A stretch of 63,709 nucleotides of DNA, counting the filler, from Choristocarpus tenellus KU-1152 (taxonomy: Eukaryota > Protista > Phaeophyceae): assembly GCA_964200185.2 (NCBI GenBank). It is 10 parts of 10 records of this genome, joined end to end, with 100 filler letters (N's around TTAATTAATTAA, not from the genome) between each part and the next. Parts side by side here need not be neighbours in the genome. Positions count along the whole stretch, not along the records: positions 42,554 to 47,481 come from CAXNAD020012498.1; 9 more parts are not named here. One strand, given 5' to 3'. The notes under the pieces are model-generated. The model was not told where the DNA came from and searched no databases. It was given only the letters and a program-made list of their open reading frames with translations. Made by a program: the position numbers and the translations under genes. Numbering within the stretch: the stretch's first letter is position 1; every line of letters starts with the position of its first letter. This document shows, one piece after another, positions 42,454 to 47,581 of this stretch.

Positions 42454-43321
42454 NNNNNNNNNNNNNNNNNNNNNNNNNNNNNNNNNNNNNNNNNNNNTTA
42501 ATTAATTAANNNNNNNNNNNNNNNNNNNNNNNNNNNNNNNNNNNNNNNNNNNNACCATCGCCATCACCATCAAGAGGGTCCATTCTCATCACCATCATCA
42601 TGAAGAGGGTTCATTCCCATCAATACTGCATGGACATGGGGTCTTCACTGTCTCAAAATTGATGATTAAAAAAATACATCATGAGGAGAACATGGTTCGC
42701 GTGATCCTTCACCCTGGCTTAAGCCAGGGTGGGGTTAGTTTAGTGTTATGTTGATGTATTGTAGTTCATAGCACTACAGAGTGATCTATAGTATCTGTGG
42801 TGCTACATGTCTCTTGTGGTTTTTAGGGGTGCGGTCGGGTGGGGGGGGGGGCTGGTGCTCTGCATCTCTAGGGTGTGAAATCCCTTCCATAGCTTAGAAC
42901 TACCGAATGAATAGCAATAGTACTACCTAGAAGCATTACATTTGAAATATTGATAGTACTTGGAGTTAGGGTCAGGGTTAGTCATTCTGTGAAAGCCCCC
43001 ATGTAAGGATTATTTATTAATAAGCACAGTACAGAATATCACATAGTAGTAACAATAATGTTAATAATAATTAATTTCACTCCTCTACAACATTTGCCAT
43101 TATCCCTTCAAAATTATCACTATCCATACAGTAGTCGGGGAATACGTTCCTTAACAGAAATAATAATATTAATTTCTTAGCAGTAACCTCATCCACTATA
43201 CATATTACACCTTTTTTTTCTTCACTTGACTGTCCTTCCCACACACCAAGAGAGCCAGTTTGATGACCTACCCATCCATTCCACTCCACTCCACTCCCCT
43301 GTCTTGATTGTCACACCTCAG

Positions 43322-45817
43322 GGGGACAATCTCCTACGAAGGGCAATATCTATGGATGAACAAAATGCCAAGAAGTGGGTAGAGATCATCAAGGTTGCAC
43401 AGGAGGGGGTACCATTAAAGGATCAGCCTCGTGTGCTGAGCAAGATTGAGGAGGACTTTCAGTGCATGGTGAGAAGGGTGTATGTGAAAACAGATGGACA
43501 ATGCAGATTAGTGGCTGGATTCACACCTTCCATATGATGGGAATGTCTAAGTTAGAGGTCGTGCCTGGGTCACATGCTCTGCTATTTTTGGATCAAGGGG
43601 GGGGGGAAGATAGAGACACATAGAGGTGTTCTTCCATGTGGTTGTACTACTCTAATGAAATGCATGCGTGACTGTTTGGTGACATGTGAATAAGGGAGTG
43701 TGAGTTGAAAAGGAGAGGGTGGGTCACTCTCAACTGCACGAGCTGTATAAAAATTTCTTGTTATTCAAATATATTTCTTATTGTTTCTACCGTTGTGGTC
43801 ATCTCACTAAAAAAAAAATGACACTTGGGGATGACCCCGACCTGTGGCCAGAGGTTCTGGTCAGAGGCGCTACACACTGCACTCCTCCTAGTACCAACCC
43901 TAACCTTAACTATGTGTTTAACTGTGGCTAATGGTATTGCCTCTGTTCCTACCAATCTTGTGCACTGAGTTATTATTATGACTGTTACTGTTAATATTAT
44001 TATTATTAATGATTATTTATTACCAATGGTATTATTATCTTGCTTCAAATTGTGTTCATCTGTTCTTTTTTTGATGTTTTTTTAAGTAAGTTTTTTTTTA
44101 AGGGAGCGTGTATCAAAGCGTTGTTTGTTCTAGGGTTAGGGTTACATGCATACACAGTTAGTAGCAGTAGTCGTAGTAGTTTTGAAAAGTTCTTGAAAAT
44201 CAAAAATAAAATAAAATATATCGTGGTGGGCAAACATCTCACGCCGTGTGGAGTGTCCTGTTAGTAGAAAGTAGTGCTTTGAACACACTCTGGGTTTGGA
44301 AACAACTACCAGGTGGTGCTGTAAAACTGTTTGGCCTACTCCACTCTGTCACTCTCAAATGTTCTCAACCTCCCTTTGTCATGTTGGTAACCAACCCCAT
44401 TGATGTTCCTGAAATAGGTGTGCATGGACATGGCATCACCGCCAGTGACCACTCCATGTGGACACAACTTCTGCCAGTCATGCCTGAAGAGGTAGGTCCT
44501 GTTACATATTATTAAAAAGATGTGTTCTGAGATGTGTAGATACTGTGTGAACATGCTCAGCAAACTGATTACTGTCTGAACCCCTTTTCATAGGGTTGAA
44601 GTATATATGTTAAGTATGTATGTTAAGTATATATGTAAGTATATAGTCCCCATAGCTTGATTGGTTTTAGTGAGAGCGGTTCCTCGAACGGTCCTGAAGG
44701 CCCCTCCAGCCCAATGATCCAATATGCCAATGCCTCCAAAGCAGTATGAAAACCATCTCATCTGTATCTACAGACGGCTGGTAATACGTTGATCACAATA
44801 GACGTAACGAAATAATATGAGTGTACACAGTGTTAGCCCATGGCCCCTGTGCTCAACTTACTGACAAGCAATTGAAGTAGAAGAGGTTTGAGAAGTTAGG
44901 GTTAGGGTTAAGCAGTGTAACGGCGAAATATGTTGAAAGCGTTTGTTGTTAAGTTGGGAAGTCACCAACAAAGGTGGGCAGGTTTTCTTATGTCTGTGGG
45001 CTTGCTTGTTGGTAATGGCTCCATATATATTAGGAAAGGTGTTACGTTCTTAGATACTTTTTTTGTCATCAATCAGCCAGTCAAATGTACCTTGAGAGAG
45101 AGAGAGAGAGAGAGACGGTTTTGATTATCTATTTTATAAGTGTATATATATATATTTTTTTCAATAAATATACCTCCAGGAAGAAAGTTGTATTGTCAGT
45201 ATTGATCTGATAGATAATACATGCACGTATTTATGACCCCAAGTATTTGTGGTTTGAGATGTGTGAATATAAGGGGGGACGGGAGGACTAAGACTTAAGA
45301 GAGGGTTAGGGTTAGGGTATCATATCCAGACTTTTGATGTTATTGCAGTCGGCTCTTTCCGTCAAGAAGATGTGAGAGTTAAAAAGACGTACTACTCTTT
45401 GGCGGGGTGATTATGACGATTATGATGTCAGTAACACAAGTGTCCGCTACTGATAGCACTACTGCACCTTTTGTATCCTCTTACATCTTACTTACATACC
45501 GATAGGAAGTATAGAACACCACACACATGCTGACAAAAAGCACAAACTCACTTCCCAGGCCAACCTCGTGGGCCACGCTCATTGATAACACCATTCCTTT
45601 TTTGCTTGTTGATTGGACTGTGTGACGTGTCTCTTCTTATCTATAACCCTAACCCTAACCCCGTATTTCCAGAGGTATGAAGCACCAGGAGCAGAGTGGC
45701 GACAGCGCAGCATGCCCTTCATGCCGTGCTGCTCTCCCTGAGGCATTTGCTGCCAAGACACCGATCAATTGCCGTCTGCAGACCGTGTTGAGAGAGCTCT
45801 TTCCTGGATCTGGTTGA
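43322..45817 (+). CDS. UHRF1-like RING (C3HC4) E3 ligase, last three exons
   Basis: Exons 43322-43468, 44418-44491, 45673-45817 splice in frame: ..DEQNAKKWVEII..LSKIEEDFQCMVCMDMASPPVTTPCGHNFCQSCLKR..CPSCR..INCRLQTVLRELFPGSG*, collinear with the UHRF1 C-terminus. Confidence 0.8.
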
Positions 45818-47581
45818 GTGGAAGGACAAGACCGGTCTCAGGCTCTCATGGGGTGTTCATTCAGATTGCCTGTCCCAGTGAGGGAGGGATGTTGGCAAGG
45901 CCCCCAGTGTTTTGAGGCAGTGCGCTTGAAGTAGTGTTGGGTAGGCTGCATGTGTTGCATATCTTTCTAAGGCAGTTTGTGTTTGACGTTGGGAAGTTTC
46001 ATAGTGTTTTGTGTCGAGACTGGAGCAGCGGTGACAGGCATGAGTCTGGCAAATGGGGCACAGGGAGTGGTGGTGATGATAAAAGGCTAGGTTTGACCTT
46101 CTGAAGTGTATCGATTGGTGATGTAGAAATCTCGTGCAGGCAGACAACATCTCTCTCACACTAACAAAAGCAAAACAACTCTACTTCACTTCCCAAATTT
46201 TGTACAGATTCGTGTTAATATCATTGTTAATTTTGTACTCTCCGATTTTGCATAGTATGTCGTCTCACAAGGTCCGTCCTACCTGCCTAGTGTGTTGTGT
46301 TTGCACTGCAGAGAGTCAGTCCATGATGCAATTTCACCAAGACTGTACATGGGGTACTCTTGGATGAGGTCTAACCCTAACCCTAACCCATAAAAGCCCT
46401 CTGAGAAGGAGAATAAAATGAGTATTTTGTTTCTATGAAAATGGAAAACTTTAAGTCTCACCAGGAATGAACAATAGATTCCATCGGATAGGGTTTGCTG
46501 CAAGATTGCTGCCCTGACTGCCACGCCTTTCTGACCACTCCAATGCCTACCCTGACCTGAGGCTAAAGGCGTCTTTTGTGTGGTGTGAACCCTTCACACT
46601 CTATGGCACTCTGTGGCACTTTACTGTCCTGATTTAAGTAGTCAACACTACCTGCCCAGAGACCGCCACCAATATAAACAAGGGGAAAGCACTGACATAA
46701 ATTCAAGGTATGCTTGTAATATAACAAGTTTTAACATACTTTGGAATGTCAGTATGGTTATTGCAAAGGTGATGACTGTCACATCAGAGTGTTCGGACTA
46801 CACCTACTTAACGGTGTATGTTTTGATACTCCTGGATGAGAAATTGGCTCAAGGCGTATCTGTGTTTCAAGACAGTTTCATCAAATAATGCTTAAAAAAC
46901 CATCTTCGAATCATGAAGTACATTTATGTGGCAAGTATTTTTGGTGGTAGGGTAGCAATTTAGACGTCAATTGAAAAAATGACATATTAGATCAGTTGGA
47001 GTGATTAATGGTTATGATGTGGGGAGGGGGGGTGAAGGTGCTATTTTATCACCGAGATTTTAAATACAACTTGTAATAAAATCCAAGTGGTACACTGACC
47101 AAGCTCATTTCGAAAACAATGTTTTACGACATGTTTCGTGCCGATTCTCATCAAAAAAAGAGCACCGAGCAATAATCTCCTGTGTAGTGTGCAAACACTC
47201 TATTAGATCGTATTTCCAAGCATGTCTACCGTGTTCTTCAAGACAAGGTACTCACTCCTTGACATAGAGTTGTACATTGTATGTAGCACTCCGTCTATAA
47301 CATGCTCTTCGGCACAGCTCTATATTGTCTGTAACCACTCCAAGCCCTGTTTTCCGTGACCTGGTACCCCAATCAGTAGAAGTAGGAGCGGTATGTGTGG
47401 TTGTGACCTTCTGACTGACAAATGAGGAAAGTCGGGGGGGGGTGTTCTTTTCACAGTCGATTTGCCAAAGTGTTTAAGTGGNNNNNNNNNNNNNNNNNNN
47501 NNNNNNNNNNNNNNNNNNNNNNNNNTTAATTAATTAANNNNNNNNNNNNNNNNNNNNNNNNNNNNNNNNNNNNNNNNNNNN

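Follow-up and report, generated by a model that had tools for sequence, protein, structure and literature searches.

UHRF1 is the usual helper of DNMT1, the enzyme that copies DNA methylation, and its SRA (YDG) domain flips out the 5-methylcytosine of hemimethylated CG sites. The mechanism of UHRF1 has been described (Bostick 2007; Nishiyama and Nakanishi 2021, both as cited in PMC10538959), and its role in mono-ubiquitination of histone H3 and in recruitment of DNMT1 is summarised in 10.1101/2023.01.30.526367. In plants, MET1/DNMT1 is partnered by the VIM/ORTHRUS proteins, which carry an SRA domain (PMC9861306). UHRF1 evolves in step with DNMT1, and the two have repeatedly been lost together (PMC10538959); in the part of that 180-species survey considered here both are given as 'ND' in Rhizaria, in Alveolata and in nine stramenopile rows, including those of Ectocarpus siliculosus and Tribonema minus. 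The Phaeoexplorer preprint records DNMT1 only in Discosporangium mesarthrocarpum, Schizocladia ischiensis and Chrysoparadoxa australica, and infers its loss in all other brown algae. UHRF1 is mentioned neither in the main text of the Phaeoexplorer preprint nor in 43 of its supplementary files, and full-text literature searches that paired UHRF1 with either brown alga or stramenopiles yielded, from the texts within their reach, no paper reporting such a gene.

Here we describe a locus from a window of 63,709 nt, that is, the whole stretch of DNA that was analysed, along which all positions are counted. The analysis covered positions 42554–47481 of the window (4,928 nt, hereafter the piece), and each exon of the gene model served as a separate query. 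We put at roughly 0.8 the probability that the piece carries the 3' end of an expressed gene, with its last three coding exons and its 3' UTR, and that this gene encodes a UHRF1-type E3 ubiquitin ligase. The three small exons and the peptides that the sequence-only reading had reported for this region were recovered in place, as judged from the translations, the GT..AG borders, the kept frame and the joints seen in one sequencing run, X3 (Table 1). All exon borders conform to AG|exon|GT and a single frame runs through to the TGA. The translation of exon 1 ends in ...LSKIEEDFQCM, and an arginine codon is split by the phase 2 intron, with AG contributed by exon 2 and A by exon 3. Exon 3 supplies a 16-residue loop, Cys7-x2-Cys8-Arg and the post-RING helix INCRLQTVLRELFPGSG, followed by the stop codon.

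Table 1. Coordinates of the features recognised on the piece, counted along the window.
Feature	Position	Strand	Description
Intron upstream of exon 1, 3' part	42554..43321	+	X3 contig match starts at 43319-43322; X3 depth 0 at 42554-42883
Exon 1, coding	43322-43468	+	49 codons; linker, pre-RING helix NAKKWVEII, then LSKIEEDFQC including the first zinc-ligand Cys
Intron 1	43469..44417	+	949 nt, GT..AG, phase 0; joint in X3 contig (depth 32)
Exon 2, coding	44418-44491	+	24 codons + 2 nt; VCMDMASPPVTTPCGHNFCQSCLK; RING core: Cys2, Cys3-x-His4, Cys5-x2-Cys6
Intron 2	44492..45672	+	1,181 nt, GT..AG, phase 2; joint in the same X3 contig as intron 1
Exon 3, last coding	45673-45817	+	1 nt + 47 codons + TGA; GMKHQ...CPSCR...INCRLQTVLRELFPGSG
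3' UTR, end approximate	45818..46435	+	~0.6 kb; X3 contig unspliced to 46329; AATAAA at 46412; X3 depth 0 from 46514
Telomere-type arrays	42965-42981, 43894-43910, 44130-44145, 44894-44912, 45301-45319, 45643-45662, 46370-46390	both	

Three public runs, X1, X2 and X3, carry the piece; they come from three samples of one study from 2024. An X3 contig of 3,345 nt with a depth of 32 matches the piece at 43319–43467, 44417–44489 and 45671–46329 and nowhere between, skipping 43468>44418 and 44491>45673, both of which are GT..AG. The X3 depth is exon-biased, falling to zero at 42554–42883 and after 46513 and being thin within the introns. Neither splice joint is present in the contigs of X1 or X2, and both of these runs cover the piece continuously, as genomic DNA would, X1 at a depth of ~18x. 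X3 was treated as an RNA library because of its spliced contigs and exon-biased depth. Since both joints are found in X3 and are absent from X1 and X2, splicing is observed here and not merely predicted; the gene is spliced and expressed. The X3 contig opens with 2,464 nt that match nowhere on the piece, and the next upstream exon lies beyond its left edge; no exon of the X3-supported transcript was detected upstream of exon 1 within the piece. The longest contig of X3 measures 16.7 kb, and the run, RNA-like in its spliced contigs and exon-only depth, has a record that gives no library type.

A frame of 66 codons, open from the left edge of the piece (42554–42751), was considered as a further exon and rejected, having neither a Pfam match nor X3 cover. 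Within it, a 31-nt direct repeat (2.2 copies, 42555–42622) encodes a His-rich stretch, and the segment is probably intronic repeat DNA. The seven telomere-type arrays, each (TTAGGG)2-3 or its complement, occur on both strands within 4.9 kb and all lie in introns or in the 3' UTR, one of them 10 nt upstream of the last exon's acceptor site; shuffled sequence yields 0.055 such arrays per piece. At the four exact arrays the contig depth rises from ~18 to 360–1,580, and there are hundreds of contigs that have just these ~20 nt in common, their flanks being unrelated. Therefore, it seems that the genome carries very many dispersed short telomere-like motifs. Homopolymers of 8–11 G residues are also present (42838–42848, 43597–43606 and 47433–47441 among them), as is a (GA)11 microsatellite at 45094–45115, and the X1 contigs differ in length by one G at two of the G homopolymers. 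The G runs and the microsatellite are likely soft spots of sequencing or assembly. Comparison of the piece with Rfam yielded no match.

Read across the exons, the translations give the pattern C-x2-C-x11-C-x-H-x2-C-x2-C-x16-C-x2-C, which corresponds to a C3HC4 RING with eight of the eight zinc ligands in place. Hydrophobic residues (M and V) follow Cys1, a proline follows Cys7 and an arginine follows Cys8; in RING E3 ligases, positions of this kind make contact with the E2~ubiquitin conjugate and activate it. Exon 2 matched three Pfam families above their cut-offs (zf-C3HC4, 3e-8; zf-RING_UBOX, 2e-8; zf-C3HC4_2, 2.5e-8), and in the PDB it matched many RINGs, with TRIM25 as the best (E 8e-7) and residues 58–79 of the UHRF1 structure 3FL2 among the matches. 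Exon 2 thus reads as a generic C3HC4 RING core that is by itself not diagnostic. The TRIM/RBCC layout, in which an N-terminal RING is followed by a B-box and a coiled coil, was not found; the RING lies at the C-terminus, with 26 residues from the arginine after Cys8 through the final glycine and then the stop.

The informative parts are exons 1 and 3, which are nearly devoid of RING residues. When searched separately against the PDB (177,635 sequences), each returned UHRF1 first. For exon 1 the best match was to residues 15–56 of 3FL2, equivalent to human UHRF1 684–725 (E 0.047), and apart from UHRF1 entries (3FL2 and full-length chains) the matches included only a designed helical repeat protein. 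For exon 3 three UHRF1 sequences stood at the top (E 6.9e-4, 0.0021 and 0.003), followed by noise only; the best matches were to human UHRF1 (3FL2 88–121; 758–790 of the full-length protein) and to a second UHRF1 of 782 residues. Exons 1, 2 and 3 align collinearly to 3FL2 15–56, 58–79 and 88–121, that is, to residues 684–725, 727–748 and 757–790 of the 793 of human UHRF1. The similarity flanking the RING exceeds chance, because exons 1 and 3 independently return UHRF1 as the best match and do so in collinear order. The 'UHRF1-like' label of the sequence-only reading and its claim that the likeness extends to either flank of the RING are therefore borne out by these PDB searches, by the pre-RING helix, by the complete C3HC4 RING and by a post-RING tail ending in ...LFPGSG (compare ...LFPGYG in animal UHRF1); the human UHRF1 strings that it had quoted agree with the PDB alignments of exons 1 and 3.

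Several points tell against the UHRF1 assignment: exon 2 alone scores RINGs of the TRIM25/TRIM31 type above UHRF1, the E-value of exon 1 is marginal when taken alone, and the Cys6–Cys7 loop is five residues longer than in human UHRF1. Taking the flanks and the RING together, we regard the fragment as very probably of the UHRF1 type on the basis of its sequence. In a feature search of the ESM Atlas, exon 1 returned HAT/TPR helical repeats at 0.92–0.95; we rejected this identity as a generic helix-hairpin likeness, given that the exon leads directly into a RING and its match to UHRF1 reaches as far as the first cysteine. With exon 3 as the query, the clusters retrieved were of generic RINGs and scored below 0.9. 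Pfam assigned no family to exons 1 and 3, returning sub-threshold DUF matches or none.

Searches for closer relatives were made with individual exons. At E ≤ 0.001, exon 3 produced a single match, P0001, among 1.84 billion representatives of 15 billion proteins, and this was discarded as spurious, P0001 being a tandem-repeat protein of 1,157 aa matched in 11 stretches; that set of 1.84 billion representatives thus contained no genuine relative of exon 3 at this threshold. The 103-aa ORF that spans exon 1 retrieved nothing in a word search, which covers only proteins of 57–180 aa and leaves full-length relatives out of its range. Scans of metagenomes, one with the peptide of exon 1 and one for exact copies of a 24-mer from exon 3, were likewise without a match. 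An exact look-up of the product encoded by the exon 3 ORF gave no record.

The nucleotide composition of the piece bears on DNA methylation. Over the 4,928 nt of this one locus the observed/expected ratio of CpG is 0.40, with GpC at 0.77, TpG at 1.26 and CpA at 1.31; for the exons alone the CpG ratio is 0.35. The CpG depletion pattern invoked by the sequence-only reading is thus visible on the piece itself. Depletion of CpG with an excess of TpG and CpA is the classical signature of germline deamination of 5-methylcytosine at CG, and the locus therefore resides in DNA that is CG-methylated now or was so for long in the past. Such depletion agrees with a working maintenance system, and speaks for past or present CG methylation, not for a particular maintaining enzyme. 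If the protein acts as its animal counterparts do, the pre- and post-RING helices would pack against the RING, as in the UHRF1 structure 3FL2, and the RING would recruit an E2 of the UBE2D type. An upstream SRA domain, if present as in UHRF1 and VIM, would read hemimethylated CG behind the replication fork, and the RING would then mono-ubiquitinate the tail of histone H3 (in animals also PAF15). The RFTS domain of DNMT1 might bind the ubiquitinated H3, upon which the daughter strand would be methylated and CG methylation restored; that CpG is so strongly depleted at the locus fits a genome with such maintenance methylation in the germ line. A UHRF1–DNMT1 pathway had been proposed from the sequence at the outset. 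Of that proposal, the UHRF1-type gene end stands, being spliced, expressed and located on a CpG-depleted piece, and the pathway part is a reasonable extrapolation from family knowledge. A role as a DNMT1 partner in a brown-algal genome is plausible by analogy.

The source of the contig permits two readings, neither of which we hold at better than somewhat under even odds. According to the first, which is tentative, this is an ochrophyte contig of the brown-algal lineage, for example from a taxon that kept DNMT1, and it encodes a full, animal-like SRA-RING UHRF1. Were this so, no RING-bearing UHRF1 would have been recorded before it in the SAR supergroup, and the ancestral DNMT1–UHRF1 pair would have survived into the brown-algal stem lineage, which predicts joint loss in most brown algae. 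In a DNMT1-keeping alga the gene would be the expected, so far unreported partner of that DNMT1, and the co-loss of UHRF1, DNMT1 and CpG depletion across brown algae would become directly testable. According to the second reading, which is just as tentative, the contig carries an ordinary animal UHRF1, either because the sequenced organism is itself an animal or because an animal lived on the sampled organism or alongside it, and has no bearing on brown algae or other ochrophytes; in that case it would be a routine UHRF1 and mainly a warning of contamination. Both flanks of the RING resemble vertebrate UHRF1, including the terminal LFPG-x-G, an AATAAA lies ~600 nt past the stop, and telomere-type TTAGGG motifs are present. 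The introns have ~40% GC, as against 47–57% GC in brown-algal transcripts (Phaeoexplorer tables), housekeeping genes of invertebrates typically show CpG depletion in the gene body, and the assembly is fragmented, the contig being 4.9 kb long. An animal source is, however, harder to reconcile with the lack of any exon 3 relative at E ≤ 0.001, since a closer UHRF1 would be expected from a well-sampled animal phylum, an expectation that assumes adequate coverage of the library, and with the Cys6–Cys7 loop, which is five residues longer than the vertebrate loop and unlike it. The GC content of the coding sequence (0.53) equals that of Discosporangium coding sequence (0.54, Phaeoexplorer tables), an agreement that is suggestive only, and the piece was found in three samples of one study. 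That this 2024 study comprises both DNA-type and RNA-type runs is a circumstantial point for a brown-algal origin. The sequence-only reading, which drew on further pieces of the genome, had taken the organism for a presumed ochrophyte.

Whatever the organism, the identity of the full-length protein depends on what precedes the three exons. The 2,464 nt of X3 transcript upstream of exon 1 have room for up to ~820 codons. Human UHRF1 has ~675 residues (~2,025 nt) before the aligned point, with which the length of the upstream transcript is compatible. A UHRF1 family member must also possess an SRA domain, and the animal type has in addition an N-terminal UBL and the histone-reading tandem Tudor and PHD modules; as a matter of length compatibility only, all four could be accommodated. 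We think it fairly likely that the full protein carries an SRA domain and works with DNMT1. Alternatively, only the C-terminal RING module would be of the UHRF1 type, set on an unrelated N-terminus devoid of SRA, and the protein would be an E3 ligase that does not read hemimethylated DNA. The observed exons contain no SRA, RING modules are often shuffled, and fungal UHRF1 homologues that possess SRA and lack the RING indicate that the parts are separable (PMC10538959). Nevertheless, we consider it unlikely, given that UHRF1 is the only PDB match of the flanks before and after the RING, that ~820 upstream codons fit the UHRF1 layout and that the locus is CpG-depleted. A chance pattern of ORFs or a dead gene fragment (pseudogene or retrocopy) might be suspected from exons that are short and mostly missing among the long ORFs, but it is highly improbable and, for practical purposes, ruled out by the spliced X3 contig, which joins the exons at an RNA-type depth of 32, together with the canonical splice sites, the intact frame and the full set of ligands, and a retrocopy would moreover be intronless.

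The end of an expressed UHRF1-type E3 ligase gene, as we read the locus, can be compared with three groups of known proteins. With the RING E3 ligases TRIM25, TRIM31 and TRIM5 it shares the RING core, these giving the best PDB scores for exon 2. In TRIM proteins, however, the RING is N-terminal and precedes a B-box and a coiled coil, whereas here it is followed by 26 residues and a stop, and exons 1 and 3 match no TRIM protein in the PDB. The plant VIM/ORTHRUS proteins, arranged as PHD-RING-SRA-RING, likewise carry a C3HC4 RING towards the C-terminus, and PVTTPC-x-HNFC, the motif of exon 2, is typical of their RINGs as well. VIM proteins extend well beyond this RING and are not known to possess the LFPG-x-G end or the NAK-x-W pre-RING helix. 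Animal UHRF1 (human UHRF1/ICBP90, mouse Np95; 3FL2) differs in several respects: only about 45–50% of residues are identical where the two align, the Cys6–Cys7 loop comprises 16 residues here and 11 in vertebrates, which is the one clear difference, and the comparison covers the C-terminal exons, upstream of which any UBL, tandem Tudor, PHD and SRA domains would be encoded. Shared with animal UHRF1 are the NAK-x-W-x-E pre-RING helix, the LSK(I/V)EE-x-FQC segment leading into the first cysteine, the C3HC4 RING with CP-x-CR, and the post-RING tail (V/I)N-x2-LQTVL-x2-LFPG-x-G, which ends a few residues from the C-terminus.
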